IMG/VR virus record: IMGVR_UViG_3300042558_004148
Span: 309,486 to 373,485 of that record
Reading direction: 5' to 3' (one strand)
Length of the DNA stretch: 64,000 nt
The notes below the pieces were generated by a model. It had not been told where the DNA came from and made no database searches. It saw only the letters and a list, made by a program, of their open reading frames with translations. Numbering within the stretch: the stretch's first letter is position 1; the number at the start of each line of letters is the position of its first letter. Positions 1 through 39,172 of the stretch are shown one piece after another. The translations under genes and the position numbers were made by a program.

Positions 1-200
1 GAACAGGTGTTACACCAGGTGGTATTAAAAAGACAGGGACATATCTTCTAAATATTGGTCTTCCTATGATGAAGAGATTCTATAAGCCGGAGGACATAGA
101 GAAAATGAAGATGATAACAAGCGGACAGTTAATAGATGCTGCTAAAGCTAAAGAACTTCTTGCTGGTGGAGCAAAAGGGGGAGAATTATCTCTGGATTAA
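1..200 (+). CDS. 3' end of a hypothetical protein (partial)
   Basis: Open frame from position 3 (TGVTPGG...GELSLD) to TAA at 198-200. Confidence 0.6.
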   Translation, partial: TGVTPGGIKKTGTYLLNIGLPMMKRFYKPEDIEKMKMITSGQLIDAAKAKELLAGGAKGGELSLD

Positions 201-231
201 GAATATATAGATTATAAAAATATAAAAAAAT

Positions 232-1092
232 ATGAACAATAAACACATTAAATTATTCGAAGCTTATGTCTCTGAAACTAGCGACATTATAAATGAAGCT
301 TATGATGATATGATGGCTAACCATGCTGATGGTGATTTTAATATCGATGAAGACACTATGACTTATGACTTATCAGAAGATGACGAGGATATGGATTGGC
401 TGGATGACGAAGAATTAGGAAGTGGAGAAAAAGCAGCACTTGCTAGGGATTTTCAAATTCTAACTAAACCACAATTAGCAGCACTTTACCTAAGGGCATT
501 AGGAAAAGCTCAGGAAAATGATCCAGGTAAATATTTGGTAATGGTTGATGGTATCGATCAGTTCGGTGAATATGATGATGACAGCAGAGCATTTAAAGTT
601 AGTACTGCAGCTCTTGGTGATGCCATTGGACTTGATTCAATCAGAACAGTTGGACGTACAGTTAACAAATTTGTTAATCTAATTAATGGTACTGGTGAAA
701 CTTCTTCTGAGACAATCTACCCTAAATTACTTAGAGCATACGAATTTTTCCAAAATAAACCGGTTTCTCAAGTAGCTAATTTGGCATCTGAAGCAGTTCA
801 GGATCCTACAGTTTCTACTAAACACAGAGAGGAAGCTATTGCAGCAGGACCTAGAGCAGCAGCTCAAAGAGCAGCTCAAAAGAAAATGCAATTGGAAGTT
901 GGATCTAAAGTTTTTGCTCTTATTAATTCACTAAGAAGAAACGAAATCTTCAGAGACATCACTAAAGCTCATAGAGCGGCAGTTAATAAGATGGCAGCTG
1001 AAACTGGATTAACAGCAGAGAGAATTAATCTTGCTTATAGAACATTCTTAACAGATAAAGGAATTATGTCAGGTGCTAATTACGCTATGTAA
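232..1092 (+). CDS. hypothetical protein, putative head-packaged (N-term KHIKLFEAY)
   Basis: 286-aa ORF with acidic N-region; GAATATATA motif at 201-209 upstream. Confidence 0.75.
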   Translation: MNNKHIKLFEAYVSETSDIINEAYDDMMANHADGDFNIDEDTMTYDLSEDDEDMDWLDDEELGSGEKAALARDFQILTKPQLAALYLRALGKAQENDPGKYLVMVDGIDQFGEYDDDSRAFKVSTAALGDAIGLDSIRTVGRTVNKFVNLINGTGETSSETIYPKLLRAYEFFQNKPVSQVANLASEAVQDPTVSTKHREEAIAAGPRAAAQRAAQKKMQLEVGSKVFALINSLRRNEIFRDITKAHRAAVNKMAAETGLTAERINLAYRTFLTDKGIMSGANYAM

Positions 1093-22055: not shown

Positions 22056-22070
22056 CTAATAAATAAAAAT

Positions 22071-22142: not shown

Positions 22143-22160
22143 CTAATTAATAACTTGCTT

Positions 22161-22583: not shown

Positions 22584-22588
22584 TACAT

Positions 22589-22663: not shown

Positions 22664-22794
22664 CTTTTTTATTACTAAGATTATGGCTTTTATTAAGATC
22701 CATCAAAGGTTTTGAATTAGTTTAGATTCTCAGGGCTAATATAGTCGACGATTCGAAATCAACTTTAGAATATATAATTATAAAAATAAAATTT

Positions 22795-23478
22795 ATGTGG
22801 AATGAAACCGAGTCTATTCTTGCTAAAAAATTACTAGAGGATGGAAAAAAATATAGAGAAATATCAGAAGTAATAGGTAAAAGTTACAATTCAATTAAAA
22901 ACCATCTTTTGAAAAAATATGGAATAAATCAATCTCAATTCGACAACTTAAGAAATATCGATATTCTAATTTGCCTTTGTTGTGGAGATGAGTTCGATAA
23001 TGAGAAATCTGGCAAGACAAGAAAATATTGCTCAGTGACGTGTTCAAATATAAGTAGAGGGAAAAAAAATCTAAAAAATTGTCCGATCTGTTTTAATACA
23101 GTAGATAAAGAAAAAAGAACCAAATACTGTTCACCAGAATGTCATAGTAAATCTATAACAAAAATAAATCAGGAAAAATTAGACGGCGGGATTTTTACTG
23201 ATTCAAACAGAAAAACTATTAAGAAGTTTTTAATATTAAAAAGAGGACACTGCTGTGAAATTTGTAAAAATGAAAGTTGGAATGGCGTAAATATACCATT
23301 AATATTGGATCACATTGACGGAAATCCCCAAAATAACCTAGAAAATAATTTTAGGTTGATTTGTCCAAATTGTGACGCACTAACACCAACTTATATGGGG
23401 AGAAATATAAAAAATATAAAAAGAAAACCCCGACAAAGAGATTTAGATAGGGATATAAAAATACAGAAGAATTCGTGA
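22795..23478 (+). CDS. free-standing HNH endonuclease with an N-terminal HTH and Zn-finger modules
   Basis: CEIC...LILDHIDGNPQNNLENNFRLICPNCDA; YCSVTC and YCSPEC; GAATATATA at 22768. Confidence 0.9.
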   Translation: MWNETESILAKKLLEDGKKYREISEVIGKSYNSIKNHLLKKYGINQSQFDNLRNIDILICLCCGDEFDNEKSGKTRKYCSVTCSNISRGKKNLKNCPICFNTVDKEKRTKYCSPECHSKSITKINQEKLDGGIFTDSNRKTIKKFLILKRGHCCEICKNESWNGVNIPLILDHIDGNPQNNLENNFRLICPNCDALTPTYMGRNIKNIKRKPRQRDLDRDIKIQKNS

Positions 23479-23495
23479 TTATGATCGGATCAATT

Positions 23496-23576
23496 GCTTG
23501 AGTGGTGGAATTAGGTAGACACGCTAGATTTAGGATCTAGTGCTTCGGCGTGAGGGTTCGATTCCCTCCTTGAGTA
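23496..23576 (+). tRNA. tRNA-Leu(TAG) copy 2
   Basis: CTAGA-TTTAGGA-TCTAG. Confidence 0.92.
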
Positions 23577-23581
23577 CAAAT

Positions 23582-23667
23582 GCCCCGGTGGTGAAACTGG
23601 TAGACACGCTGGACTTAAAATTCAGTGGGCCGTAAGGTCCGTGCGGGTTCGACTCCCGCCCGGGGTA
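23582..23667 (+). tRNA. tRNA-Leu(TAA)
   Basis: CTGGA-CTTAAAA-TTCAG. Confidence 0.93.
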
Positions 23668-23672
23668 CAATT

Positions 23673-23758
23673 GGAGAGTGATCCGTGATGGCGATCGGGT
23701 CCGCCTGCTAAGCGTGACGTACGGGAAACCGTATGAGGTTCGATTCCTCCGCTCTCCG
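23673..23758 (+). tRNA. tRNA-Ser(GCT)
   Basis: CGC-CTGCTAA-GCG; long variable arm; GGAGAG/CTCTCC-G. Confidence 0.82.
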
Positions 23759-23784
23759 CTTTTAATTAAAAAAATTAGATATTA

Positions 23785-23816
23785 TTTTTATTACCCGTGA
23801 AACATTATTATATTTG
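23785..23816 (+). promoter_or_regulatory. class-1 promoter for tRNA array C
   Basis: TTTTTATTACCCG-11nt-TATATTTG. Confidence 0.75.
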
Positions 23817-23863
23817 CAGAGTAATAAAAATAACATATAATAAACAGTTCATTGAAAATATAT

Positions 23864-23936
23864 CGTGGGGTAGAGCAGTAGGTAGCTCATTGGGCTCATA
23901 ACCCAAAGGTCGTCGGTTCGAGTCCGGCCCCCGCTA
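23864..23936 (+). tRNA. initiator tRNA-fMet(CAT) copy 1
   Basis: Unpaired 1:72; GGG/CCC in the anticodon stem. Confidence 0.92.
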
Positions 23937-23941
23937 CTAAA

Positions 23942-24089
23942 GGTTGCGAAAGCTATAGGTCAGTATGTAATGCTGATTGGCCAATGGATTAATGATGATT
24001 TAGTATTACTGCCCGAGATACCGGTTAAGCAGCATGGTAAGTGACTAAGTAAGTAATTGATATAGTAGGTTCGATTCCTACCGTGACCA
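23942..24089 (+). ncRNA. 148-nt tRNA-like RNA (acceptor and T arm only)
   Basis: GGTTGCG/CGTGACC-A; GTAGG-TTCGATT-CCTAC. Confidence 0.65.
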
Positions 24090-24094
24090 CATAT

Positions 24095-24167
24095 TGCGGA
24101 GTAGAGCAGTTGGTAGCTCAGTGGGCTCATAACCCAAAGGTCGCAGGTTCGAGTCCTGCCTCCGCTA
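24095..24167 (+). tRNA. initiator tRNA-fMet(CAT) copy 2
   Basis: TGCGGAG/CTCCGCT; GGG-CTCATAA-CCC. Confidence 0.9.
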
Positions 24168-24356
24168 CGAGTCGCTTTTAGTTATCCCTGTAGAAGATAG
24201 AGGTTTGGGTAGTGAAGTAAACCAGTGGAATTCTACAACTTTAAAAGTTTGTGTGACAAAGTAAGGTCTAATTTTCCTGACAAGGGGGCTTCCCGACGAA
24301 AAATAGAAGCTCAACTAATTAAGTAGAATCTGAATCGCTCAATTCAGATTCGAAAC

Positions 24357-24457
24357 GGTCCGGTGGTGAAGTTGGTAAACACTAAGGTGGATGTATTCGA
24401 AGGCCAAGAATAACTAACATCTACTAGGCGTCGCAGGTTCGAATCCTGCCCGGTCCA
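24357..24457 (+). ncRNA. 101-nt tRNA-like RNA with an elongated anticodon arm
   Basis: GGTCCGG/CCGGTCC-A; GTG-AAGTTGGTAAA-CAC; GTGGATGT/ACATCTAC; GCAGG-TTCGAAT-CCTGC. Confidence 0.7.
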
Positions 24458-24507
24458 CAAATCTCAAGATTAATTACCTTGAGGCTGTCAGGTTCGAAAC
24501 TGACGAT

Positions 24508-24611
24508 TGGCTATAGTGTATTGGAGCACAGCAGAACGGAGTACAAGAATAGTGCTTAGCACTCACGGAAAGGGGACGCAGGTTTAAGGTTCGAATCCTT
24601 ATTAGTCACCA
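24508..24611 (+). ncRNA. 104-nt tRNA-like RNA with an expanded anticodon region, ending ACCA
   Basis: TGGCTA/TAGTCA; GTG-TATTGGAG-CAC; TAAGG-TTCGAAT-CCTTA. Confidence 0.65.
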
Positions 24612-24735
24612 AATTTAAAAGTACACCGGAACGCTCTGATTTGTCGAAAGACTTTTCAACGACGGTACGAGGCAGTCTCTGTTTATTCGCGGTACAGAGA
24701 AAGAGAGGTTCATCCCGCTGCGTCCTCGTTATAAT

Positions 24736-24807
24736 GGTCCTGTAGTTAAACGGCTATAATGCTGCCCTGTCACGGCAGAGTTCGGAGTTCGATTCTCCGT
24801 GGGACCG
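24736..24807 (+). tRNA. tRNA-Asp(GTC)
   Basis: CTGCC-CTGTCAC-GGCAG. Confidence 0.95.
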
Positions 24808-24809
24808 CA

Positions 24810-24951
24810 AAAAGATAATGGTTCTTTCTACGTAGGTTGTCGACAAACCGAAATAGGTAAAAAAAGTTCACCACCCCTTGTGCCTGGATCCAGTAAAACT
24901 CAGGAAAGCACTTAAGATTGGAGCGAGAAGGGTACTCCATCATTATCTTTT
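24810..24951 (+). ncRNA. putative 142-nt structured RNA
   Basis: AAAAGATAATG/CATTATCTTTT closing helix; GTGC-CTG...CAG-GAAA-GCAC. Confidence 0.45.
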
Positions 24952-24956
24952 TAACC

Positions 24957-25043
24957 GGAGGAGTCGCATAGTGGTTTAGTGCACCGGTCTTGAAAACCGG
25001 CGATCCTGAAAGGGGTCCGTGAGTTCGAATCTCACCTCCTCCG
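24957..25043 (+). tRNA. tRNA-Ser(TGA) copy 2
   Basis: CCGGT-CTTGAAA-ACCGG. Confidence 0.95.
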
Positions 25044-25047
25044 CAAA

Positions 25048-25342
25048 GGGTAAGAGATACCCTCCATGTTTAGATCTCATTAAAGGATCTCGGTTAATGT
25101 CCAGGTGGTAACCGAAAGCTGGTTTGGAAAGCAATCATCTCATGGGTGGTAATGAGTCAAATTAGTTAAAATACTGGAACTGAGAACAAAGGCAGGTAGC
25201 AGAGCCTCTCAGTAGCTTGACAGGTTTTTATGTGGTAAGACACTAATGAAAAGCTTCGCATGGCTCGTACCCATGGGAGTGATGGTTCTCGAAACAGCTA
25301 GAGTAACCCGTTAAAATCTAGCTTAGCACATCTCACTAAGTG
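25048..25342 (+). ncRNA. putative ~295-nt structured RNA
   Basis: Several hairpins (CTCAT/ATGAG, CTGAGA/TCTCAG, AGCTAGA/TCTAGCT, CTTAG/CTAAG); no long ORF; richer in GC than the coding background. Confidence 0.45.
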
Positions 25343-25347
25343 AACAT

Positions 25348-25419
25348 GGCCCGTTCGACTATCGGTTAGGTCGTCAGGTTTTCATCCTGGAAAGAGGGGT
25401 TCGATTCCCCTACGGGCTA
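25348..25419 (+). tRNA. tRNA-Glu(TTC)
   Basis: TCAGG-TTTTCAT-CCTGG. Confidence 0.95.
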
Positions 25420-25489
25420 CTATGTGTTAGATACTGTAATATTTAACACAGAGCCAATGAAAGTGATTTACAGATTGCTTGAATTGGTT

Positions 25490-25667: not shown

Positions 25668-27569
25668 ATGAAAAAATTACTCATTCTCATTTTTGGAATC
25701 CTGCTGATACCATATCTAGGATTCTCACAATGTCCAACAGCTCCGGGAAATGGAGTCTATGTTATGGTCAATTCACAATATCAGGTAGGTACTGTAGCAT
25801 CAGGAAAAACCAATATAGGTCTATGTTATCAAAACACGACATCTACCTTGATCACCGGTTTGCAATACAGAGTTTGGTATGATAAGAATGCATTCGGCGG
25901 TGGAGCTCCTATAGTAACATCAACAAATACATCATTTGCACAGGTACTTCAATACGAGAATAATCTATCGGAAGGTAGCATTACAGTAACTATCGTTTAC
26001 ACTGGTAGTAGTAGCACTTTTACTATTCCATCAGGTGCATTATTTAATATAGAATTACAACATTCAGCAAACTTTCAAACCTTCACTAATAATATAACTA
26101 ATATTGAGGTAACTGGAACAACAACATTCAATAATCTAAGCTCAAATATAGATGGTCTTGATGATCTATTAACCCTTCATAATTACGGTGGGGTTATTAA
26201 TTCTGTAATGTTTAATTACCAGGGTAACTTTGTTAACGTTACCGGATCGCCAGCTAAGAATCTAACTCTTGCTCTAGAGAAGAAACCTAAAACCGGATCG
26301 ACTTGGTCTATAGATGAGATTGACACTACTGATCTTAATGGTGAATTCAATTTTTCAAAATCGATAGACACCACATACTATGACGTTAGACTTGCAGTTC
26401 AGGGTGATACATTATCAGTAGGTAATATAGTTACTGTGGCCGATGCGCAAAGAGTTAATCAATATGTTCTTGGACAACTTCAACCATCCGGATTTGATTA
26501 TTATTCTTCCGATGTAAATAATTCAGGTAACATTACAATGTCGGACGTTTACGGAATATATGGTAGAATAGCGGGAAGATTTAGTGCTTGGCCAAATAAC
26601 GTACCTGACATCAGATTCTTTAGTGCTTCCGAATATGCATCGATCAATGGATCTTCAACAAATCAGACACAATCAATACCAGGGGTAACTAATCTAACGT
26701 TCGATATATTACCAGGCCAACCAGATTCGGTCACATTTTATGTACTTGGATATGGAGATGCCAATGGTACAGGATATAACATGGCTCGTTTAGTTCCGAT
26801 AACTATTATAAATCCGAACAACACACCAAATTATATAATGGACGTGACAACGCAATATGATGACACTACATTGTCTACGATTGAAATTAACATGCCTAAG
26901 GTGACTGTAGATGAAGCAAATCTTGTAACGATACCTGTTACATTAAAATCTAATTCAGGTCCAATAGGATCGCTACAAATGGCATTATACTACGATCCAT
27001 CTTTATTAGAATTTAAGGAAATAGTTAATAGTGAAAAATCAATGGATTGGATGAGTTTCGTTAATCCAGTTGAAAATACGATCGAATGGGGAGGATTTGA
27101 TATCTCAGGAAATCAACATCCAATAAATGATGGTGAAAACCTATTTAATCTTAAGTTTCTTGCACTTGAACCACAGTCAGATTGGAATGCTAGTCCATTA
27201 TGGGTAACAAGGAAATATGCGGGTAATTCTATTGCAACTGATCTGATCATAAATCCAACCCACGGTGAAGTTAAAATAATGAATATCTCATCAGGCTACT
27301 TAAATCTACTCGGTAACAAGATAATAGTATATCCAAATCCAGTAGACGATAAAATAATGGTTGCTTTTGAGGTTTCAGAGAAAGAAAATATAACACTATC
27401 GATTTACGATATAAACGGAAAACTTGTAGTTGATTTAATGAAAACTAATATGCCAAAGGGAAAATATCAGTACACTTATGATATTGGTGAACTATCAGCT
27501 GGTTTATATGTTGCAACATTAAATATCAAAGCAAGCCAAATAGCGACAGCTAAAATAATTAAAAAGTAA
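25668..27569 (+). CDS. secreted cohesin-like / Ig-like / dockerin-like / cohesin protein with a T9SS type-A C-terminal sorting domain
   Basis: Signal peptide; ITGLQYRVWYDKNAF; SDVNNSGNITMSDV; VTIPVTL...GSLQMALYYDPSLLEF; VYPNP...LSIYDINGKLV...AGLYVATL...KIIKK. Confidence 0.85.
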   Translation: MKKLLILIFGILLIPYLGFSQCPTAPGNGVYVMVNSQYQVGTVASGKTNIGLCYQNTTSTLITGLQYRVWYDKNAFGGGAPIVTSTNTSFAQVLQYENNLSEGSITVTIVYTGSSSTFTIPSGALFNIELQHSANFQTFTNNITNIEVTGTTTFNNLSSNIDGLDDLLTLHNYGGVINSVMFNYQGNFVNVTGSPAKNLTLALEKKPKTGSTWSIDEIDTTDLNGEFNFSKSIDTTYYDVRLAVQGDTLSVGNIVTVADAQRVNQYVLGQLQPSGFDYYSSDVNNSGNITMSDVYGIYGRIAGRFSAWPNNVPDIRFFSASEYASINGSSTNQTQSIPGVTNLTFDILPGQPDSVTFYVLGYGDANGTGYNMARLVPITIINPNNTPNYIMDVTTQYDDTTLSTIEINMPKVTVDEANLVTIPVTLKSNSGPIGSLQMALYYDPSLLEFKEIVNSEKSMDWMSFVNPVENTIEWGGFDISGNQHPINDGENLFNLKFLALEPQSDWNASPLWVTRKYAGNSIATDLIINPTHGEVKIMNISSGYLNLLGNKIIVYPNPVDDKIMVAFEVSEKENITLSIYDINGKLVVDLMKTNMPKGKYQYTYDIGELSAGLYVATLNIKASQIATAKIIKK

Positions 27570-27583
27570 AAAAAAGTAAAAAA

Positions 27584-27916
27584 ATGTCAGAAGAAACAAA
27601 CAACGTTGAGACCAACGATGGTACTTGGTCGGGATTAAAGAAAACCATAATCGGTACTCTAACAACTGTTATCGCAGGTGGTGGGGTTTGGATTTCTACA
27701 CTATTATTCGGCGGAAACGAGGATAAGGAAGAAACTAAAACCGAGCAGGTAGCTCCGGCTCCAGTTGTAGTTAACGTACAGCAAAACCAGGAAAACACTC
27801 AGAAACAACAAAACAATGGTGGAACACACACTATTATCAAAGAACGTGTTGTAGAAAAACCTGTTGAAAAGAAAGAGGAAAAGAAAAAGGACGAATCAAC
27901 TGATGCTCCTTGGTAA
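27584..27916 (+). CDS. small single-TM membrane protein
   Basis: TIIGTLTTVIAGGGVWISTLLFGG followed by a charged low-complexity tail. Confidence 0.75.
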   Translation: MSEETNNVETNDGTWSGLKKTIIGTLTTVIAGGGVWISTLLFGGNEDKEETKTEQVAPAPVVVNVQQNQENTQKQQNNGGTHTIIKERVVEKPVEKKEEKKKDESTDAPW

Positions 27917-27934
27917 TTAAAATAAATTAAATTT

Positions 27935-28285
27935 ATGTCATTAAAAAAATCACTAGGCTTTGGTAAAGAAGATCTGACTAAAGTGGCAGACAACAATAGA
28001 TTCTATCATATGCTTCAGCAGATGCAATCTAATAGATGGAGAATTACTGCTATAGTACTTGGATTATTTACATTAATAATAGTTGGTATCAATGCAGGAG
28101 TTTTTCTTGGAGCTACTATTAACGAGGACTGGAAAGAAATGTTACTTATACTATTAGGTGCTTTTGTTGGTAATCTAAATAAAGTTGTTGATTATTGGTT
28201 TAACTCTGAAGACAGGGATAAAATGCTCATCCAGAAGGTGGATGAAGAAGATGGTGTTGCTTTATCTAACACTATAGAAAAATAA
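27935..28285 (+). CDS. two-TM membrane protein (holin-like topology)
   Basis: ITAIVLGLFTLIIVGINAGVFLG; MLLILLGAFVGNLNKVVDYWF. Confidence 0.75.
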   Translation: MSLKKSLGFGKEDLTKVADNNRFYHMLQQMQSNRWRITAIVLGLFTLIIVGINAGVFLGATINEDWKEMLLILLGAFVGNLNKVVDYWFNSEDRDKMLIQKVDEEDGVALSNTIEK

Positions 28286-28296
28286 TAAAATTAAAA

Positions 28297-28530
28297 ATGA
28301 AAAAGTTTTTTAGCCAAATTTTCCAAGATGAAAAGGGAAATTATTCATCCAACAGATTTGTTGGTATCATGTGTGCAGTTTCACTTTGTGTTACAATGTA
28401 TCACAATTCATTCTCAACTGAGGATGTAGCACCAGCTCCAGCACTAATTAATGCAGTTGCAGCTCTTGCTTTTGGTGCACTTGGTTTAGGTGCAGCTAAT
28501 AAGATCTTCTCTAAGAAGAAAGAAGATTAA
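28297..28530 (+). CDS. small two-TM membrane protein
   Basis: SSNRFVGIMCAVSLCV; ALINAVAALAFGALGLGAA. Confidence 0.75.
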   Translation: MKKFFSQIFQDEKGNYSSNRFVGIMCAVSLCVTMYHNSFSTEDVAPAPALINAVAALAFGALGLGAANKIFSKKKED

Positions 28531-28546: not shown

Positions 28547-29266
28547 ATGAGATTCTCACTAATACTACTATCTTTAATTCTTGCTACTTCAAGTATTTAT
28601 GCACAGCCGGGTTCAGTAAAAACTGAACAGTATCAAGCTGAGTTTGAAAAGAAGCAATCAATAGATGTTGTAGCTGAATATACGGACACAATAAAAATAC
28701 CAATACAAATATTAAAGATTGGTATTAGTGAGGAACTCTATGAATTTTATCCGGAATTAAAAGATAAGAGAGTCGGCCTTGGTGTAACCAATATAGTTTT
28801 AGAATATCTTGAGATGACAAACAGATTTGTGTTCACTGAGGATAAGTTGGAGATTAAGGAAAGGATGATCCAGCAATTTAAGGCTTCGGATAAGGGGTTT
28901 ACTGAAAATAAAATGGACGGCAGAGGAAAAATTAAGTTAGCTAAATATTTTGTTTATATAGAGGTTTATGACTTTTCGGTATCTGATGATGAGGTTCTTA
29001 AATTGAACGGAGAATCTAAAACAACACAAGTAACAAGATTAGGACTTCAAGTTAAATTTGTAGATTCCGAAACTGGTGAGGTCTTAATGGGATCTGGATT
29101 AGGTGAGGCAACTACAATTAAAACAGCATCAATATTGGATGGCGTTGATGATAGTGATATTAAATTCAACCAATCCACAATAGGAACAACAACAAAAAAA
29201 TCACTAGAGACAGCTTCCTCAAGAATAGTATCTAGAATGATCAAAAAAGGAATTTTTAAATCGTAA
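28547..29266 (+). CDS. CsgG/HfaB-like exported protein
   Basis: Signal peptide; GLGVTNIVLEYL...RFVFTE; YFVYIEVYDFSV; LGLQVKFVDSETGEV...GLGEA. Confidence 0.7.
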   Translation: MRFSLILLSLILATSSIYAQPGSVKTEQYQAEFEKKQSIDVVAEYTDTIKIPIQILKIGISEELYEFYPELKDKRVGLGVTNIVLEYLEMTNRFVFTEDKLEIKERMIQQFKASDKGFTENKMDGRGKIKLAKYFVYIEVYDFSVSDDEVLKLNGESKTTQVTRLGLQVKFVDSETGEVLMGSGLGEATTIKTASILDGVDDSDIKFNQSTIGTTTKKSLETASSRIVSRMIKKGIFKS

Positions 29267-30850
29267 ATGTATGCTAAAACCATATCAACATTATTTCTTA
29301 TTCTCGCATTCAATGTAATTGGATATGGGCAAACATTCACGTATTCTTATACCGATCCATGTACAGGGTCAATAAAATCTCTACAGGTTCCTTCCAATGG
29401 GATCACAGTTAATTATTACGGAGAAATCCAAACATTCCAGCCAATAGATTTTTATAATGGCGGATTTGAAACATGGACACAAAATGTTTATTCCAATTAT
29501 GGGGGGAACAATCCATGCGCAACTATAGTTGGCTTATCGTCAACAGTTAATATTGCACAGAACACCGCTATAAATTTTATAGGTATAGTTAATTCATTAT
29601 CTGCACTTAGCGATATGGCTGCTACTGCAGGATCAACTAATATATTATCCGGCGTGGGGAGTGTACAGAATTCATCAAATGGTGGGAACAATAAAGGTAA
29701 GAATAAACAAACAGGATCTGGAGGAACAACAGGATCTGGTGGTTCTCAAAATCAGGGAGGTAATAATGGAAACAACAGCAGCAATAACGGAAATAGTAAT
29801 GCTAACGGTAGTAATAATACCGGGGGCTCTACAGCTACTAACGGGTCTACGCAATCTAATGACCAAACAACAGGATCTGGAGGAACAACAGGATCTGGAG
29901 GAACAACAGGATCTGGAGGAACAACAGGATCTGGAGGAACAACAGGATCTGGAGGAACAACAGGATCTGGAGGAACAACAGGATCAGGTCAGACAGGCAC
30001 TTCAAGCGGATCAAGTGGATCTACTGGTCAGAATAGCAGCAATACTAATGGGAGCGGGGGTTCCACAGAAGGAGGCAATGGAAAAAGCGAATCTACTACT
30101 ACCACAGAAACCCCTACAGAAAGCGAAGGAAAAACGAATATAGTTGGTGGATCTGTTGCTTCAGTACAAAATTCAACAAACAGCGGTGGCTCACCGTCTA
30201 ATAAAAATGGAAACAGACCAACGATATTAGCCAGTAGTGATTTTGTTGGATTCAATTTCAAGGATTCGGATGTAACCGCAGGTGGTAAAGTAACGGGAGG
30301 TTATACCTCGATGAGATGGGATGGTGCAAGATCATGGGGAATTAATGCAGATTATACAACAGCTATAAAAGGGCCAAACATAACAGGATTCTATGCTTTC
30401 ATTAAAAAGAAAAGAATAGATCTTATATCAGGTACAGTAACATTAGGATTCGATAGAAGATCATCATTGTATGGTACATTAGCTCTTGGTCAAATGTGGA
30501 ATATAGGCAAACGTGGTAAATTTAAAGCAGTTTATATGCTAACTGGATCTTACGGTAATGTATATGGTGAGGAATTTGTAGGTACTGCAGCAATAGCTGG
30601 TACCATGTATGATTTTAAAGTTTCAAAGAGAATAGACATTAAACTTCTGGGATTATATGTTTATGCTCCTTATGTTAGTTATTATAACGATATACTATTA
30701 AAATCACCGCACGTGGTTTTACCTATAGTTGGTACTAATGTAAGTTTAAGTAAGAGATTTAAACTTAACGTAAACTGTGGAGGTGCATGGGCTCTTAATG
30801 AGAATGCACTTAATTATACCATAATGCTAGGAACAAGAATGTTATTATGA
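29267..30850 (+). CDS. exported protein with a Gly/Ser/Thr/Asn linker and a predicted beta-barrel C-terminus
   Basis: Signal peptide; GSGGTT repeats; alternating hydrophobic strands ending YTIMLGTRMLL. Confidence 0.7.
   Translation: MYAKTISTLFLILAFNVIGYGQTFTYSYTDPCTGSIKSLQVPSNGITVNYYGEIQTFQPIDFYNGGFETWTQNVYSNYGGNNPCATIVGLSSTVNIAQNTAINFIGIVNSLSALSDMAATAGSTNILSGVGSVQNSSNGGNNKGKNKQTGSGGTTGSGGSQNQGGNNGNNSSNNGNSNANGSNNTGGSTATNGSTQSNDQTTGSGGTTGSGGTTGSGGTTGSGGTTGSGGTTGSGGTTGSGQTGTSSGSSGSTGQNSSNTNGSGGSTEGGNGKSESTTTTETPTESEGKTNIVGGSVASVQNSTNSGGSPSNKNGNRPTILASSDFVGFNFKDSDVTAGGKVTGGYTSMRWDGARSWGINADYTTAIKGPNITGFYAFIKKKRIDLISGTVTLGFDRRSSLYGTLALGQMWNIGKRGKFKAVYMLTGSYGNVYGEEFVGTAAIAGTMYDFKVSKRIDIKLLGLYVYAPYVSYYNDILLKSPHVVLPIVGTNVSLSKRFKLNVNCGGAWALNENALNYTIMLGTRMLL
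29870..29977 (+). repeat. 6 x 18-nt perfect tandem repeat ACAGGATCTGGAGGAACA (TGSGGT)
   Basis: Read directly; a further copy near 29710. Confidence 0.95.
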
Positions 30851-32520
30851 GAAAGTTTATAACCAGTCTAATCGTAATTCTGATAACATGTGCTACTTAT
30901 GCGCAAACGTTTTCCTATTCGGGATACATCTATAACGCGAATGGTACAGGAGCAGTAAATGTTCCAGTAAAGCTATATAAAAGAACAACCCCAACTTTAA
31001 CCGGATTTACCTCACAAACTAATTACAATGGTCACTCATATTATCGTTCAACAGGTTCTATGACATGGACTGCTGCTAAAACTGCTTGTGAAAATATGGG
31101 TGGACATCTTGCTACAGTTTCAAATGCAGCTGAGAATAATTTTCTCTTTAATACATGGCCATCAGGTTGGATTGGATATTATCAAGATAAAGTTGCTGGA
31201 TATACTTATTCTGAACCTTTAGGTGGATATCGATGGACAGAAACTCAAGTAACTGCAAATAGAGTAGCAGATTATGACGTTTCATCATATTCTTCAGGTT
31301 CGACCCTAGTTGATATCAAAGGAGGATTTAATGCTACTTTATACAATTCACCGACATATACAAGTACTGGTGGTAAGTATCTAAGCTTCAATGGAGCTAA
31401 TCAATATGCAATAACCGGAAACTTGGCTTCGGCAATGGGAAATACCAATCACATCACTTTGTTTGCTTGGGTTTATCCTACAGGGAATGGCGTTATTGTT
31501 AACGAACTAGGAACTGGAAGTCCTACATCCGGTTGGCATGAATCTGTTATAGAAATTACTGGAGGAAACACATTGAGAGTTGGATTTTGGACAGGAATTG
31601 GAATTCAACAATTAAGTACTACTATTACACTTAATGCTTGGCATTTAGTAGCAATAACTTATAATGGAACAACCATGAAAGGTTATTTAGATAATGTTAA
31701 TTTCGGATCTGTTAATTTTCAGAGAGAAGCTGCACATTTATATTCAGGAAATGGAGAATTTTTTGGAATAGGATTGACTGAAACTACTAATATGGGAAGT
31801 GGTGCTTATGGATCTTTTAGATTAGGAGATTTTCAAGTTTTTAATAGAGCTTTAACTGCCGATGAATTAGATAGAACATACAATTTATATGCATATAGAT
31901 ACAAGCTAAATCAATATGTTAATTGGAATGGCGGAGAACCTAATAACTCAGGAAATGAAGATTACGCTCAATTCGTAGGTAATGGACAATGGAATGATCT
32001 ACCGAACACTACTCTCCCTTATGTAATTGAATTTGATTATATCAACGATTTTACTCCTTGGGCTTTATATCAAACGGTCTATACAAATTCTAATGGATAT
32101 TATTCTTTTAGTCAATCAACGAATCCTGCAACTGAATGGTATATAAAAGTTGATGCACCTACTCCAATTACTACTCACCAAACATCAGATTTAAGTTCAA
32201 TAGGCAATATTGTAATTGGAACAACCACAAGAAAATCTATACATTGGAATATGTTTGACGTAAACAATGATGGCAAAATTACAATATCCGATTCATATTA
32301 TGTTTGGGGAAAGAAAAACGGGATATTTCCTAGCTGGATTGGATCTCAACCATCCTCACTTTATACTGTTTCCCAATTTAACTCATTGAATTCAGGAACA
32401 GTAAATTTAAAATCAATCTACCCCGGAGTAAGTTCATTTACGATATCCACCCCGGTCAGTGGGGGGTCTACAAATTATTATCTAATCGCTCCTGGATTTT
32501 CGGGACAGGTAACATATTAA
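30847..32520 (+). CDS. secreted C-type lectin with an inserted LamG domain and a C-terminal dockerin-like motif
   Basis: GHSYYRS...TWTAAKTACENMGGHLATV; WNGGEPNNSGNEDY...GQWNDL; LGDFQVFNRALT; DVNNDGKITISDS. Confidence 0.85.
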   Translation: MRKFITSLIVILITCATYAQTFSYSGYIYNANGTGAVNVPVKLYKRTTPTLTGFTSQTNYNGHSYYRSTGSMTWTAAKTACENMGGHLATVSNAAENNFLFNTWPSGWIGYYQDKVAGYTYSEPLGGYRWTETQVTANRVADYDVSSYSSGSTLVDIKGGFNATLYNSPTYTSTGGKYLSFNGANQYAITGNLASAMGNTNHITLFAWVYPTGNGVIVNELGTGSPTSGWHESVIEITGGNTLRVGFWTGIGIQQLSTTITLNAWHLVAITYNGTTMKGYLDNVNFGSVNFQREAAHLYSGNGEFFGIGLTETTNMGSGAYGSFRLGDFQVFNRALTADELDRTYNLYAYRYKLNQYVNWNGGEPNNSGNEDYAQFVGNGQWNDLPNTTLPYVIEFDYINDFTPWALYQTVYTNSNGYYSFSQSTNPATEWYIKVDAPTPITTHQTSDLSSIGNIVIGTTTRKSIHWNMFDVNNDGKITISDSYYVWGKKNGIFPSWIGSQPSSLYTVSQFNSLNSGTVNLKSIYPGVSSFTISTPVSGGSTNYYLIAPGFSGQVTY

Positions 32521-32542: not shown

Positions 32543-32998
32543 ATGAGAAATTTATTATTTTTACTACTTCTGATGCCAGTTATGGCATTTACACAAACAG
32601 AAATATGTGTTAAGATTGATTCGGTTTATTCTACTGCTAAATTAAGGGAGATGGGAAATAGAGATATCAGATTTGGTATCCAACAAATAGCTGAGGATAT
32701 ATTATCCGAAAAATATTGTCTTTCAGAAAAAGGAAATCCTATGGAAATAGAGGTTTATTATTTCGGTATACCTAAAAAATCATTAAGGATAGCAGGCATG
32801 GAAAAAACCAATCAAATAACACAGGTTGGTATTAGAATATATTACAATGGGATTAAATACGAGGGTCTGGGTGAATCAGATACCGAGGTTAGAGCAGTAA
32901 TGATAGAACTGGTTGATGGACAAGTACCATTCTCTAAGATGACAGTATCGAATGCTATAAAAAAAGCAATAATAGATGCTGTAAACAAGATAGAATAA
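32543..32998 (+). CDS. exported protein, distant paralog of the CsgG-like ORF at 28547
   Basis: RFGIQQIAEDIL vs GLGVTNIVLEYL; EGLGES vs GSGLGEA; FSKMTVSNAIKKAI vs FNQSTIGTTTKKSL. Confidence 0.6.
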   Translation: MRNLLFLLLLMPVMAFTQTEICVKIDSVYSTAKLREMGNRDIRFGIQQIAEDILSEKYCLSEKGNPMEIEVYYFGIPKKSLRIAGMEKTNQITQVGIRIYYNGIKYEGLGESDTEVRAVMIELVDGQVPFSKMTVSNAIKKAIIDAVNKIE

Positions 32999-33033: not shown

Positions 33034-33708
33034 ATGGCTTATCGAATAATATTAAGAAGAGACACCACTCAAAATTGGGAATCTAATAATCCCGTATTAC
33101 TTTCGGGCGAACCTGGGTATGAAACGGACACTGGAATACTAAGAGTCGGTGATGGACTAACAACTTGGAAGGATCTAAATCCATATTATGGTGTTACAGG
33201 ACCGATTGGTGTTACAGGTTCCACTGGAGCTACTGGAGCAATGGGAGTTACTGGAGCTACTGGACCTTCAGGAGGACCGGTTGGAGCTACTGGACCGGTT
33301 GGAGCTACTGGAGCAATAGGAGCTACTGGAGCAATAGGAGCTACTGGAGCAATAGGAGCTACTGGAGAAGTTGGAGCTACTGGAGCAATAGGAGCTACTG
33401 GAGCAATAGGAGCTACTGGAGCAATAGGAGCTACTGGAGCAATAGGAGCTACTGGAGCAATAGGAGCTACTGGAGCAATAGGAGCTACTGGAGCAATAGG
33501 AGCTACTGGAGCAATAGGAGCTACTGGAGAAGTTGGAGCTACTGGAGAAGTTGGAGCTACTGGAGCAATAGGAGCTACTGGAGCAATAGGAGCTACTGGA
33601 GCATCTATAGAATTTTCTTCTACTCAACCTGGCAATACTGCTTCGCCCTCCACATGGGGAGAAATAACGATAGGAGCTACAGCATATTACATACCTCTGT
33701 ATTTATAA
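33034..33708 (+). CDS. Mtd_N/hyaluronidase-N-like domain plus a collagen-like (GATGAI)n fibre
   Basis: [38 protein letters not shown]; GATATATA at 33003. Confidence 0.85.
33301..33603 (+). repeat. about 16 x 18-nt repeat GGAGCTACTGGAGCAATA (variant ...GAAGTT)
   Basis: Read directly. Confidence 0.95.
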
Positions 33709-33724
33709 TATAATTAGAAACCAG

Positions 33725-33753
33725 AAAAACCCGATATTATATGTCGGGTTTTT
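33725..33753 (+). terminator. intrinsic terminator
   Basis: AAAAACCCGATAT-TAT-ATGTCGGGTTTTT. Confidence 0.8.
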
Positions 33754-33821
33754 CGTGTTTCTAATTTAAGTATATGTTAATATGGATATATACTTAATCA
33801 TAAATAAAATACATCAAAAAG

Positions 33822-35381
33822 ATGCCTTATAGAATATTACTTAGAAGAGATAACGCATTAAGCTGGGCATATAATGACCCGGTTTTAATGACAGGTGAAC
33901 CTGGATACGAAACAGATACCAATAAATTTAAAATCGGAGACGGACAGGCACCTTGGTCGCAATTGCCATATTATTCTGGAGTAACTGGAGGTACCGGTCC
34001 GATCGGACCCATTGGTATAACAGGAGCTACGGGTGCTAATGGATCTAGCGGTACCTCAGGTAGTTCTGGTACTAGCGGTACTAGCGGTACTAACGGTACT
34101 TCCGGAGTGAATGGTGCTGGATTAAGTTCTAAATCTGGAACCGTTTCATCTGGTGATACCGGATGGGTTGGTCCTGTCTATGATGTTGTCTTCGCTCAGT
34201 CATTCGGGTCTACAAATTATTCCATTTCTGTTGATGTTACAAATAGTGGTCCAATAACAATAACAAATAAGACCTCTTCCGGGTTTAGAGTTGCGACGGG
34301 GATGTTTGCCGAGAATTTTGATTGGATTGCGATTGCTAATGGTGAAAGTGTGGTACCAAGTTCAAGTGGCACATCAGGTTCAAGCGGTACCTCAGGTTCA
34401 AGCGGTACATCAGGTTCATCGGGAACTGCTGGTACTAGTGGTACTTCAGGAACTAATGGATCTTCAGGTACTGATGGATCATCTGGAACTAATGGATCAT
34501 CGGGAACTAATGGTACCTCAGGCACAGACGGAACTTCAGGAACATCTGGTACTAGTGGAAGTAGTGGAACATCAGGAAGCAGTGGAAGCAGTGGAACTAA
34601 TGGAAGCAGTGGAACTAATGGAAGTAGCGGGGTTTCACCTGGATATAATCCAATCCCATATAAATACGAAAATGCAGGGGATGTAACTATAAACAGTGAC
34701 GGGACGGATCCATTAAATACCGGAAGAATGATAGGGTCCGGTATTACATATACTCCATCCAGTATAGGAACTATTGGCATCTCATTTTCATTTGGTGTAA
34801 ATATCACATCAGATTTTGTACCTCTTGATAATTATGCATTCTCTATACGATATGGGACTGGAACACCTCCAATAACTAGTGATCAATTAACAGGAACACC
34901 GATAGCTACCCAAATATACGAAACATTCAATGGACAGTCCGCAGTAACTAATATGTATATAAATTCGGTACTTACCGGATTAACTATAGGTACAGATTAC
35001 TGGTTTGATTTATCAGTAACTTCAACAGAACAGAATCCACCAACAGCAAGATTCAATGGTTCGAATATAACATGTAGTATATTGGAATTAAGTGGTGGAA
35101 TTGGAGCAACTGGTCCTATTGGTGGATCAGGTACCGGAGCAAATATATATTACGGTGACCAAACAATAACATCAGGAAATAAGGTAATTGTAAATACCAT
35201 AGAGGTATATTCAGGCAATATATTAACACTTAATTCACCTATAGTGGATGTACCAGCAATATTTAAAATCTCCGATTATTCAGCTCTTAACTTTACTGAT
35301 GATATAGGTGCCTCCGCAGGTGGTGTACCAACAGGAGGTATCTATCATAATGCTGGAGCAGTAAGGATAAGATTAACTTAA
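33822..35381 (+). CDS. Mtd_N-like fibre protein with GTSGSS repeats
   Basis: [30 protein letters not shown]; GATATATA at 33785. Confidence 0.85.
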   Translation: MPYRILLRRDNALSWAYNDPVLMTGEPGYETDTNKFKIGDGQAPWSQLPYYSGVTGGTGPIGPIGITGATGANGSSGTSGSSGTSGTSGTNGTSGVNGAGLSSKSGTVSSGDTGWVGPVYDVVFAQSFGSTNYSISVDVTNSGPITITNKTSSGFRVATGMFAENFDWIAIANGESVVPSSSGTSGSSGTSGSSGTSGSSGTAGTSGTSGTNGSSGTDGSSGTNGSSGTNGTSGTDGTSGTSGTSGSSGTSGSSGSSGTNGSSGTNGSSGVSPGYNPIPYKYENAGDVTINSDGTDPLNTGRMIGSGITYTPSSIGTIGISFSFGVNITSDFVPLDNYAFSIRYGTGTPPITSDQLTGTPIATQIYETFNGQSAVTNMYINSVLTGLTIGTDYWFDLSVTSTEQNPPTARFNGSNITCSILELSGGIGATGPIGGSGTGANIYYGDQTITSGNKVIVNTIEVYSGNILTLNSPIVDVPAIFKISDYSALNFTDDIGASAGGVPTGGIYHNAGAVRIRLT

Positions 35382-35515: not shown

Positions 35516-37582
35516 ATGAATTACAACGAAAACGAGGATGATGATTTAGCATCAGCATACAAATCAAAGAAGGGGGTAAAAACTCCCATATTAGATTCTT
35601 ATTCTAGAGACTTAACAGAGATGGCGATTAGAGGTGAATTAGATCCAATAATCGGTAGAGACGAAGAAATAGAGAGAGTTTCACAGATCCTCTCCAGGAG
35701 AAAGAAAAATAATCCAGTTTTAATTGGAGAACCCGGTGTTGGTAAATCAGCAATTGCCGAAGGATTAGCATTAAAAATAGTACAAAGGAAGGTTTCAAGA
35801 AGTCTACTCAATAAAAGGGTACTTACTTTGGATTTAGGTTCAATGGTGGCAGGAACCAAATATAGAGGCCAATTTGAGGAAAGAGTAAAGGGGATACTAG
35901 AGGAGCTCAGAAACAATAAGGATATAATAATCTTCATAGATGAAATTCATACCATGGTCGGAGCTGGCGGTGCATCGGGTTCATTGGATGCTTCCAATAT
36001 GTTTAAGCCACCATTAGCTAGAGGCGAGATACAATGCATCGGGGCAACCACGCTGAATGAATATAGACAGAACATAGAAAAGGATGGTGCACTAGAAAGA
36101 AGATTTCAGAAAGTTATTGTAAATCCTCCAGATGCAGAAACTACCATAGAGATACTAGAAAACATAAAAAGTAAATATGAGGATTATCATAATGTAAAAT
36201 ATACGGATGAAGCCATATTAAATTGTGTGAAACTTACTGAAAGATATATTACTGATCGAAATTTTCCCGATAAGGCATTAGATGCACTTGATGAAGCAGG
36301 AAGTAGAACACAGCTTAGCGATGTTAAAATTCCAGACAGCATAACTAATTTGGAAACCAGCCTTATTAAAGTAACTGAGGAAAAAGATAAATCTGTAAAA
36401 AAGCAAGATTATGAGGGTGCTGCTAAATACAGAGATCAGGAAAGAAAAATTAGATTATCTCTGGATCTTGAAATAAAGTCATGGGAAGAAAAACTTAAGG
36501 CGAAAAGAAAAGTTGTTGATGGTGAAAGAGTAGCGGAAGTAGTTTCGATGATGTCAGGGGTTCCTCTTAAGAAAGTTTCAGAGGTTGAAAACGAAAGGCT
36601 CTACAGGATGAATGATGAATTACGTGGAAAAGTAATAGGTCAAGATCATGCTATAGAAAAAATTGCTAGGGCTATCCTTAGAAATAGAATGGGACTGAAA
36701 GATCCAAATAAACCAATAGGATCATTTATGCTATTAGGACCTACCGGAGTTGGTAAAACCCAATTGGCGAAAGAATTATCTAAATATATGTTTGGAGATA
36801 CTGACTCATTAATAAGAGTTGATATGAGTGAATATATGGAAAAATTTGACGTATCTAAATTAACGGGAGCTCCTCCAGGATACGTTGGACACGAAGACGG
36901 AGGACAATTAACCGAGAAAATAAGAAGAAAACCATATTCAATAGTACTTTTTGATGAAATTGAAAAGGCACACCCCGAGATATTTAATACACTACTCCAG
37001 ATACTGGATGAAGGTCATATCACAGATAGTATGGGGAGAAAAATAAACTTCAAGAATACGTTAATCATATTGACCTCTAATATAGGCCAAAGAAAATTGC
37101 AAGAATTTGGTGGCGGTGTCGGGTTTTCAACAGCAACAAAGGAAAACTATGCTGAAATGGAAAATGAAATGTTTCTTAGAAAAGAACTTGAGAAGAAGTT
37201 TTCCCCTGAATTTATAAATAGATTGGATGATATAGTTTATTTTAAAACATTAGAAAAGAAAGATCTACTTCAAATACTTGATGTTGAATTGGATAAGGTT
37301 ATTCCTAGATTAGAATCACTAGGATTTAAAGTTAAAATAGCTGATGATCTTAAAGATAAAATATGTGAAGCTGGATATAATCCAAAATTTGGTGCTAGAC
37401 CATTAAAAAGAATAGTACAGAAATATATTGAGGATACATTAGCTGATCTGATGGTACAAAATAAAATACCACAGGAAAGCACAGTTACATTATCATATGA
37501 CAAAGAGAAAGATGGTGGTATACAGAATCCAGTAAAATTTAAGATACTACAGAAAAGGAAAAGAAAAGATGATATGGCATAG
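35516..37582 (+). CDS. clpC: ClpC-like AAA+ chaperone lacking the N-terminal Clp_N domain
   Basis: GEPGVGKS and GPTGVGKT Walker A motifs; UVR-like KQDYEGAAKYRDQE; GGVGF loop; FGARPLKR. Confidence 0.92.
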   Translation: MNYNENEDDDLASAYKSKKGVKTPILDSYSRDLTEMAIRGELDPIIGRDEEIERVSQILSRRKKNNPVLIGEPGVGKSAIAEGLALKIVQRKVSRSLLNKRVLTLDLGSMVAGTKYRGQFEERVKGILEELRNNKDIIIFIDEIHTMVGAGGASGSLDASNMFKPPLARGEIQCIGATTLNEYRQNIEKDGALERRFQKVIVNPPDAETTIEILENIKSKYEDYHNVKYTDEAILNCVKLTERYITDRNFPDKALDALDEAGSRTQLSDVKIPDSITNLETSLIKVTEEKDKSVKKQDYEGAAKYRDQERKIRLSLDLEIKSWEEKLKAKRKVVDGERVAEVVSMMSGVPLKKVSEVENERLYRMNDELRGKVIGQDHAIEKIARAILRNRMGLKDPNKPIGSFMLLGPTGVGKTQLAKELSKYMFGDTDSLIRVDMSEYMEKFDVSKLTGAPPGYVGHEDGGQLTEKIRRKPYSIVLFDEIEKAHPEIFNTLLQILDEGHITDSMGRKINFKNTLIILTSNIGQRKLQEFGGGVGFSTATKENYAEMENEMFLRKELEKKFSPEFINRLDDIVYFKTLEKKDLLQILDVELDKVIPRLESLGFKVKIADDLKDKICEAGYNPKFGARPLKRIVQKYIEDTLADLMVQNKIPQESTVTLSYDKEKDGGIQNPVKFKILQKRKRKDDMA

Positions 37583-39101: not shown

Positions 39102-39172
39102 TGTTTTATCTTTAATATGCCAAAATTGGACTTTTGTTTCGAAACCTGTCCTATTTTTTAACTATAATTAGT

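Follow-up and report, generated by a model that had tools for sequence, protein, structure and literature searches.

We analysed the last 64 kb (positions 309486-373485, here called the window) of IMG/VR virus record IMGVR_UViG_3300042558_004148, a viral contig of 373,485 bp that has direct terminal repeats and an estimated completeness of 100%. The window encodes a T4 gp15-like tail-sheath stabiliser and fibre genes with Mtd_N and collagen sequences, and the source virus is a jumbo myovirus. The gene of interest, P0001, corresponds to exactly one open reading frame (ORF) on the plus strand, 30847-32520, with an ATG at 30847 and a stop codon ending at 32520. Its 557-residue product is one polypeptide in which, as judged from sequence matches and a structural model, four domains are arranged as nested insertions: a LamG domain sits within a C-type lectin domain (CTLD), and the CTLD and a second, dockerin-like insertion both interrupt a transthyretin-like sandwich. 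The parts of the gene, all on the plus strand, are as follows.

30847-32520, plus strand: whole lectin gene P0001, 557 aa; its ATG overlaps the stop codon of the upstream barrel gene by 4 nt (ATGA)
30847-30903, plus strand: signal peptide, residues 1-19; basic N-region, hydrophobic core, YA and then Q at +1, read from the sequence
30904-30987, plus strand: transthyretin-like sandwich, strands A-B, residues 20-47; strands at 20-29 and 40-47, pLDDT 95-97
31006-31245, plus strand: CTLD N-half, residues 54-133; beta0/beta1, alpha1, alpha2, WIG strand and start of the long-loop region
31246-31905, plus strand: LamG/ConA-like jelly-roll, residues 134-353, inserted in the CTLD long-loop region; Pfam Laminin_G_3, 3e-13
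31906-32043, plus strand: CTLD C-half, residues 354-399; W360, EPN, E371, WND, beta3-beta5
31936-31944 and 31990-31998, plus strand: EPN (residues 364-366) and WND (382-384), within the CTLD C-half
32053-32154, plus strand: transthyretin-like sandwich, strands C-E, residues 403-436, placed by the model and by alignment to the paralogue P0272
32155-32346, plus strand: dockerin-like helical Ca2+-binding insertion, residues 437-500, with the EF loop at 32257-32292
32347-32517, plus strand: transthyretin-like sandwich, last strands, residues 501-557; strands at 504-507, 530-533 and 544-547, which close the host domain

The domain order is therefore signal peptide; transthyretin-like strands A-B; [CTLD N-half; [LamG]; CTLD C-half]; strands C-E; [dockerin-like module]; strands F-H. 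A LamG domain inside a C-type lectin inside an outer domain had been proposed in a sequence-only reading of this DNA, whose coordinates coincide with the single ORF and whose quoted motifs are all present: GHSYYRS at residues 62-68, GGHLATV at 85-91, WIG at 108-110, EPNN at 364-367, EDY at 371-373, WND at 382-384, and, in the outer domain, YSGYIYNANG at 24-33, VKLYK at 41-45 and TVYTNSNGYYSF at 410-421. The proposed nesting is borne out by sequence matches, by the predicted fold, and by natural homologues that do not have the insert, and we describe these lines of evidence in turn.

The domain matches clearly exceed the level of chance. The Pfam Lectin_C profile (PF00059) matches the N-half of the CTLD only, with 34.1 bits (cut-off 22.6) over residues 71-132, corresponding to profile positions 2-59 of 107. 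When PDB sequences were searched with phmmer, the carbohydrate-recognition domains (CRDs) of mannose-binding protein (MBP), DC-SIGN and CD23 were matched in two separate stretches, residues 58-133 and 355-399, and the C-half match to MBP and DC-SIGN had an independent E-value of 2e-6. In human MBP, chain residues 28-87 and 97-133 flank a gap of 236 query residues, which replace about nine residues of the long loop. The insertion site lies after the W-x-W strand (R129-W130) and before the Y-x-N-W-x-G-EPNN segment, and the insertion therefore sits inside the long-loop region of the CTLD. The inserted part itself is a clear member of the Laminin_G_3 family (PF13385; 50.6 bits over residues 183-341, cut-off 27.6), and stand-alone LamG proteins align to it en bloc over residues ~131-352 of P0001.

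We built an AlphaFold2 (AF2) model of P0001 on 64 homologues, with a mean predicted local distance difference test (pLDDT) of 84.3 and a predicted template-modelling score (pTM) of 0.54. In the model the two CTLD halves rejoin as one CTLD, so that the structure prediction suggested as a check in the sequence-only reading does rebuild a single lectin domain across the split. In an exhaustive structural comparison, langerin (5g6u_A) matched the model with a Z-score of 13.2 and 119 of its 131 residues aligned to model residues 50..403, DC-SIGNR (1sl6_A) with Z 12.9, 115 aligned residues and 29% identity over 49..402, and ASGPR, SRCL, CL-K1 and tetranectin also matched across the split with Z ~12.5. 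ConA-like and LamG structures match the intervening model residues 132..356, the best being domain 4 of AbnA (5hon_B, Z 20.6, 190 aligned residues over 135..346). The trans-sialidase lectin domain and the jelly-roll Hcn domain of clostridial neurotoxins match the LamG part at fold level only (13-19% identity), and the latter likeness implies no toxin function. Full-length Foldseek searches against PDB and BFVD are dominated by the LamG domain and are uninformative on the other domains. Four proteins considered as cases of a LamG-in-CTLD insertion outside the P0001 family (P0247, P0253, P0215 and P0216, which match past the LamG part) turned out to be plain LamG-repeat proteins.

The residues of the sugar site were compared across the 64 homologues, which are 44-92% identical with a mean column identity of 54%. 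W360, G363, P365, E371, W382, N383 and D384 are invariant, and E364 and N366 are retained in 63 of the 64 sequences; the exception, P0123, is the most diverged (41% identity), carries QPD in place of EPN and has a second LamG domain at its C-terminus. In CTLDs the EPN motif is compatible with fucose (Fuc), mannose (Man) or N-acetylglucosamine (GlcNAc), and QPD is the galactose-type variant of the motif. The conservation of EPN, E371 and WND is what a working principal Ca2+/sugar site should show, and the earlier suggestion that EPN plus WND indicates Man/Fuc/GlcNAc binding is consistent with it.

The outer domain, which the sequence-only reading called Ig-like, is real in both of its halves (residues 20-47 and from 403 onward), but its predicted fold is a transthyretin-like (prealbumin-like) sandwich and it is part of a larger unit. 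The paralogue P0272 (25668-27569) contains this outer module without the head. P0001 405-550 has its counterpart in P0272 213-363 (E 8e-11), and P0001 22-46 is weakly matched by P0272 182-206; where P0001 has 358 residues, P0272 has a hairpin of six. A model of P0272 residues 176-374, built on 58 homologues (pLDDT 89.1, pTM 0.85), matches the transthyretin-related protein 2igl_A in PDB (Z 6.9, 96 of 116 residues aligned; Foldseek E 1.4e-4), the transthyretin-like domain of carboxypeptidase D (Z 5.1-5.3; 5aq0_B, Z 5.3, 78 of 82 aligned) and CnaB/SdrD-B pilin domains. All of these matches cover model residues 6..187 across a helical excursion (~72-138), which argues that the host is a single prealbumin-like sandwich of eight strands, whose strands E and F are separated by a helical insert. 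The scaffold model also superposes on the ESM Atlas model of the 557-aa CTLD+LamG family (186 residues, root-mean-square deviation 2.0, template-modelling (TM) score 0.83 by query), and this provides structural evidence that parts of P0001 that are distant in sequence form one domain. The sequence profile of the scaffold additionally matches 2igl at E 0.01. We consider the transthyretin-like fold class likely for the outer domain, membership in a transthyretin-like family being not established.

The helical excursion contains an EF loop, D471-x-N473-x-D475-G-x-I-x-x-x-D482, and D448, D471, N473, D475 and D482 are invariant among the homologues. The scaffold profile matches both repeats of the cellulosomal ScaB dockerin (4uyp_B, E 0.0024); of the two Ca loops the second (D471-N473-D475-D482) is canonical, whereas the first repeat, although it can be aligned with that dockerin, does not show the loop consensus. 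Pfam Dockerin_1 (PF00404) scores 17.1 bits in P0001 and 19.4 bits in P0272, below its cut-off of 22.9, and a few homologues have a precomputed PF00404 match. Residues 437-500 may therefore be described, from their sequence, as dockerin-like, with membership in the dockerin family not established.

In related phages the scaffold stays constant and the head, which is predicted to be carried by the B-C loop of the sandwich, varies. In order to survey these heads we combined an exhaustive representative search with Pfam scans. In the same scaffold we found a CTLD alone (P0124, P0203 and gp013 of Flavobacterium phage vB_FspM_immuto, hereafter immuto), a PA14 domain (P0138, P0146), and heads that match no recognised domain (P0147, P0190, P0193), and P0272 is headless. 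The ESM Atlas adds GEVED and Ig_7+CTLD heads, in clusters that are 97-100% viral, and the scaffold model superposes on the Atlas CTLD[LamG], CTLD, GEVED and Ig_7+CTLD families with TM scores of 0.81-0.84 by query. Both the CTLD+LamG and the CTLD-only form are abundant, with >1789 and ~2000 clusters at 90% identity. In one relative (L007:7001-8158) a PA14-head protein occupies the slot of the lectin gene.

The exchange of the LamG part can be followed among close relatives. The immuto protein gp013, which has no LamG domain, aligns to P0001 residues 3-130 and 357-551 with 52% identity. The CTLD-only protein P0124 matches Lectin_C profile positions 2-96 in one stretch and has a central loop of the canonical short type; its N- and C-terminal flanks are 88% and 94% identical to those of the LamG form P0114, but only 77% and 59% identical to those of other CTLD-only proteins. 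A quick maximum-likelihood tree of the flanking sequences (68 rows, with P0123 and P0203 left out because they do not have the anchor motifs) requires at least eight changes between the LamG and short labels, six of which are forced by well-supported branches; since the tree search was unfinished and recombination violates a single-tree model, this count is indicative only. These sequences indicate that genes which are otherwise alike gain and lose the LamG-bearing segment through recombination.

The signal peptide, the dockerin-like second insertion and a surrounding cassette of envelope proteins were absent from the sequence-only reading, and together they point to a protein that is exported by the infected cell. 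The N-terminus of P0001 reads MRKFITSLIVILITCATYA and is followed by Q at +1. In 197 of 244 family proteins there is a prefix of ~19 residues that contains basic residues and a hydrophobic core and ends in A/G/S/T at -1, before Q at +1, and the same type of signal occurs in all five secreted proteins of the cassette, the three small membrane proteins being excepted. The preference of Bacteroidota signal peptidase I (SPase I) for such sites has been described as the "Q-rule" (PMC5837995), and phages of Porphyromonas gingivalis that encode Q-rule secreted proteins provide a precedent (PMC10367356). The lectin gene is the fourth in a tightly packed run in which 28547-29266 abuts 29267-30850, the latter overlaps the start of the lectin gene, and 32543-32998 follows. 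The other genes of the cassette are listed below.

25668-27569, plus strand: P0272, 633 aa; signal peptide, N-domain, headless transthyretin-like plus dockerin-like scaffold, cohesin, and sorting domain of type A of the type IX secretion system (T9SS)
27584-28530, plus strand: three small predicted membrane proteins of 110, 116 and 77 aa, with hydrophobic segments read from the sequence; found in the same place in relatives
28547-29266, plus strand: secreted 239-aa protein, 62% identical to immuto gp017; CsgG/HfaB/LpoB-like lead
29267-30850, plus strand: 527-aa protein with a signal peptide, a Gly/Ser/Thr/Asn-rich region and a C-terminal outer-membrane beta-barrel of ~200 aa
32543-32998, plus strand: secreted 151-aa protein, the last gene of the cassette; homologue of immuto gp019, no family match

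The T9SS type A sorting domain of P0272 (Por_Secre_tail; Pfam 52.4 bits; TIGR04183) is the only one encoded in the 373-kb genome, and homologues of P0272 form >1430 clusters. We considered the N-domain of P0272 as a second cohesin and dropped this idea, as its profile has no match to PDB sequences at E <= 10. For the 239-aa protein the nearest named Atlas clusters are CsgG/HfaB/LpoB-like (0.94-0.95), which we treat as a lead only. The 527-aa protein has an autotransporter-like layout, with a low-complexity region of ~250 residues that contains GSGGTT repeats, and its barrel resembles those of KdgM, Tsx and autotransporters (Atlas structural matches, TM ~0.8 by query). NCBIfam has no match for the lectin, the CsgG-like protein, the barrel protein or the 151-aa protein.

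The cassette is also syntenic in immuto. There the counterpart of P0272 is divided into two genes, gp014 for the scaffold part and gp015 for the cohesin and the C-terminal sorting domain; the split in one phage and the fusion in the other give a Rosetta-stone hint that the scaffold and cohesin parts act together. Synteny extends to relatives on contigs of 190-238 kb and to the PA14-head relative. In those relatives an endolysin-type gene, GH19(+PG_binding_1) or glucosaminidase, flanks the cassette; the only GH19 match of the source genome is ~150 kb away. The signal peptide and the neighbours in the cassette suggest export to the envelope of the infected cell and not incorporation into the virion, and on this sequence evidence the lectin is probably such an envelope protein.

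Taken as a whole, it seems somewhat probable to us that P0001 is the exported glycan-recognition head of a phage-built envelope complex, with a Ca2+-binding CTLD and a possible cohesin tether. The lectin would be exported by the host Sec system during infection and would act at the cell envelope or surface, where the CTLD would bind a Man/Fuc/GlcNAc-type sugar via Ca2+ and the LamG domain would supply a second carbohydrate site. The dockerin-like module may tether the lectin to the cohesin protein that the T9SS would place on the surface. A head that can be swapped suggests adaptation to surface polysaccharides that vary between strains. Such a lectin could mask receptors against superinfection or prevent progeny from adsorbing to doomed cells and debris, and it could also stick infected cells to glycan-bearing particles or to neighbours.

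Several observations weigh against this reading. The lectin does not carry its own T9SS C-terminal domain, lipobox or barrel, and it may therefore stay in the periplasm. The EPN loop is weakly modelled, with pLDDT <50 at residues 113-132 and 362-371, which form the Ca/sugar-site loops, and a pTM of only 0.54 makes the placement of the LamG domain relative to the CTLD site uncertain, so that LamG could even occlude it. P0001 is a CTLD by sequence, by fold and by its site residues, but the two canonical disulfides are absent: of the four cysteines only C81 is conserved among the 64 homologues, and the other three positions hold Y373, L385/P386 and I394. The transthyretin-like fold scores are moderate (Z 5-7, all below 8), and the CarboxypepD_reg-like pattern of the sequence-only reading finds no counterpart in Pfam, where CarboxypepD_reg and its relatives do not match P0001 even at E <= 10 and the nearest family is SdrD_B (E 0.4). 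A complex prediction with P0001 437-557, the N-domain and cohesin of P0272 and Ca gave a median of 0.54, and a control in which the cohesin chain was replaced gave 0.77; this speaks neither for nor against cohesin binding. No RNA run among those searched contains the lectin gene. Finally, Mtd_N/collagen fibre-like genes lie directly downstream (33034-35381), and LamG and lectin domains are features typically seen in virion fibres.

This last point leads to an alternative in which P0001 is an adhesin attached to the virion, as a tail fibre or head decoration, that binds host surface glycans at adsorption, its hydrophobic N-terminus not being a functional export signal. Phage virion proteins commonly contain LamG_3 domains; the lectin matches a virion structural protein in PHROG (E 5.9e-7, LamG part only) and LamG virion proteins of cyanophages in BFVD, fibre genes are its immediate downstream neighbours, and swappable heads are also what is seen with receptor-binding proteins. 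However, the Sec-type signal with Q at +1 is kept across the family and throughout the secreted genes of the cassette, which includes a T9SS-sorted protein and an outer-membrane barrel rather than virion parts, and the recognisable tail genes (gp15-like, PKD) are ~26 kb distant; we consider this alternative unlikely. If the lectin instead remained in the periplasm, as its want of an outer-membrane export signal would allow, it could serve lysis: its CTLD would bind peptidoglycan through the GlcNAc backbone, in the manner of RegIII C-type lectins, or would bind glycoconjugates of the periplasm or outer membrane, and the cassette would help to breach the envelope. The endolysin-type genes that adjoin the cassette in relatives (GH19+PG_binding_1, glucosaminidase) would suit this role, and holin- or spanin-like roles are conceivable for the three small membrane proteins. 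Yet these proteins match no lysis family, the distant position of the sole GH19 match in the source genome does not fit, and a head that varies between strains suits surface polysaccharides better than invariant peptidoglycan, which makes a lysis-associated lectin quite improbable.

It is highly improbable, in our view, that the insertion has disabled the CTLD and left it as a mere structural connector for LamG. Low pLDDT in the CTLD loops beside the insertion and the loss of disulfides would fit such a role, as would a secondary Ca site that seems altered beside the insertion, where the equivalent of MBP-A E165 is G/A (mapped by eye); but the principal Ca-site ligands together with W360 and W382 are invariant over the 64 sequences apart from one lineage that has switched from EPN to QPD, and LamG-plus and LamG-minus forms interconvert among near-identical proteins. 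The sequence-only reading had further suggested that the lectin might recognise glycans made by the phage, as the window encodes GDP-fucose synthesis and a fucosyltransferase. These genes are indeed present, in a block (38442-48678) in which several ORFs without a family match are interspersed. The recognised genes of the block are glycosyltransferases (GT) and related enzymes.

38442-39101, minus strand: GT7, animal-type galactosyltransferase-like
39931-40782: GT11 fucosyltransferase
41605-42417: GT2
43396-44505: UDP-galactopyranose mutase (Glf)
45163-45753: FkbM methyltransferase
46784-47695: GDP-fucose synthase-like epimerase
47695-48678: GDP-mannose 4,6-dehydratase (Gmd)

The lectin could then specifically read glycans that the phage produces through its fucose/galactofuranose pathway, whether these decorate modified surface polymers of the host or proteins of the phage, and in favour of this are the presence of all seven genes within the window, the compatibility of EPN with fucose, and a review in which Immutovirus is reported to have cell-surface glycosylation genes (PMC11500664). 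The suggestion nevertheless gains no specific support from the genome: the glycan genes lie in a block of their own, 6-16 kb downstream of the lectin (GT11, the GDP-fucose synthase-like gene and Gmd at 7-16 kb), immuto (the one phage searched for co-occurrence) has the lectin cassette and no GT11 match, and in related phages the same slot is occupied by heads other than a CTLD. As nothing beyond the shared genome links these genes to the lectin, we regard recognition of phage-made glycans as rather unlikely, and as a possible minor alternative that bears on the ligand only.

The favoured reading, an exported glycan-recognition head, can be compared with known systems. The predicted P0001 fold resembles the Ca2+-dependent CRDs of animals (MBP, DC-SIGN/DC-SIGNR, langerin, CD23) with Z 12.5-13.2 over 108-119 aligned residues at <=29% identity, and has the WIG, EPN, E and WND motifs in common with them. 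Unlike these CRDs, P0001 has no disulfides, carries a 220-residue LamG in its long loop and is itself an insert, and it is encoded by a phage and has a bacterial signal peptide. By analogy, P0001 might work like a CRD of the collectin/DC-SIGN type combined with a LamG carbohydrate-binding module on a dockerin-bearing carrier. To our knowledge, there are hardly any descriptions of phage CRDs of the canonical animal type, with an EPN/WND site, and the phage C-type-lectin folds that we know of are of the divergent Mtd/FGE type. Its LamG domain shares the jelly-roll of other LamG_3/ConA-like domains (AbnA 5hon, trans-sialidase, neurotoxin Hcn, LamG of cyanophage virions; Z 17-20.6) but differs from them in being inserted within another lectin. 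Close counterparts are immuto gp013 (YP_010114425.1, annotated as "lectin C-type domain-containing protein") and ~2000 metagenomic relatives, with the same scaffold, CTLD position and cassette neighbours; gp013, whose flanks are 52% identical to those of P0001, is only 332 aa long, and its cohesin/T9SS partner is divided between two genes.

The dockerin-like module shares with the cellulosomal type I dockerin-cohesin system (ScaB, 4uyp) the DxNxDGxIxxxD EF-hand-like loop and flanking helices, and a cohesin gene is found in the same cassette. It differs in that its first Ca loop is degenerate, its score falls below the Pfam threshold, and it is located inside a beta-sandwich and not at a terminus, and its context is a phage of a T9SS-bearing host, as opposed to a cellulolytic Firmicute. 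A bolder possibility, which we hold to be doubtful, is that freshwater Flavobacterium-type phages assemble, on the cell that they infect, a complex resembling a cellulosome. In it a cohesin protein exported by the T9SS would anchor dockerin-bearing scaffolds, and the glycan-binding heads of the latter (CTLD, CTLD[LamG], PA14, GEVED and others) would pass between phages by recombination. If true, this would amount to a programmable lectin coat on the host that serves superinfection exclusion, protection of progeny or attachment to particles.

Nested insertions of the form A1-B1-C-B2-A2 have been documented up to six levels deep, and in the same survey inserts are usually smaller than their hosts, with medians of 115 and 199 residues (PMC13114784). 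In P0001, by contrast, each insert is larger than its host, with ~220 residues in ~125 in ~120. The Q-rule proteins of P. gingivalis phages (PMC10367356) are likewise adapted to the Sec/SPase I route of Bacteroidota and have been proposed to modify the envelope; they are unrelated to P0001 in sequence, have no described function, and are not described as lectins or T9SS cargo. A survey of jumbo phages reported LamG3 and discoidin lectin domains on virions and no domains with a C-type-lectin fold (FGS; PMC7824862). In the literature that we searched, which does not include the original description of immuto, we found no account of a phage T9SS-cohesin cassette, a phage EPN C-type lectin or this protein, and no description of a LamG-in-CTLD insertion, of the combination of CTLD, LamG and transthyretin-like domains, or of the scaffold family. 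P0001 suggests that a canonical CRD can accommodate in its long loop a domain that exceeds it in size, without disulfides and while being a loop insert in its own right. It can be regarded as a natural case of how far the "loop-in-a-loop" design of the CTLD stretches, and it may be a template for domain-insertion engineering. The structural curiosity by itself is of modest interest, and the head-swapping scaffold and the envelope cassette add weight to it: a scaffold with interchangeable heads, a dockerin-like module and a neighbouring T9SS cohesin may represent an undescribed way in which lytic Bacteroidota phages remodel the host surface.

The phage group that carries the lectin cassette is of Flavobacterium type and occurs in fresh and brackish water. 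The closest cultured relative at the lectin locus is immuto, from the Baltic Sea, which together with its host, Flavobacterium sp. LMO8, makes the system experimentally tractable. The lectin gene is found in near-identical form in lake, river, estuary and wastewater metagenomes of 18 studies, which indicates that the system is ecologically widespread.

Other features of the window were also recorded. Four fibre-like proteins with collagen repeats and/or an Mtd_N head are encoded on the plus strand at 33034-33708, 33822-35381, 60508-61296 and 61353-63998. The last of these ORFs exits the window and lies in a stretch of 45% GC, where Gly-X-Y coding gives rise to long spurious ORFs on both strands. 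Right after the first two fibre genes, at 35516-37582 on the plus strand, there is a gene for a full-length ClpB/ClpA-like double AAA+ chaperone (AAA_2, AAA_lid_9, ClpB_D2-small). The window also contains an array of 32 tRNA genes at 9216-25420 on the plus strand, which covers most amino acids and includes four tRNA-Met(cat) genes and one oddity, at 20717-20787, to which ARAGORN assigns a two-base anticodon, "cg".

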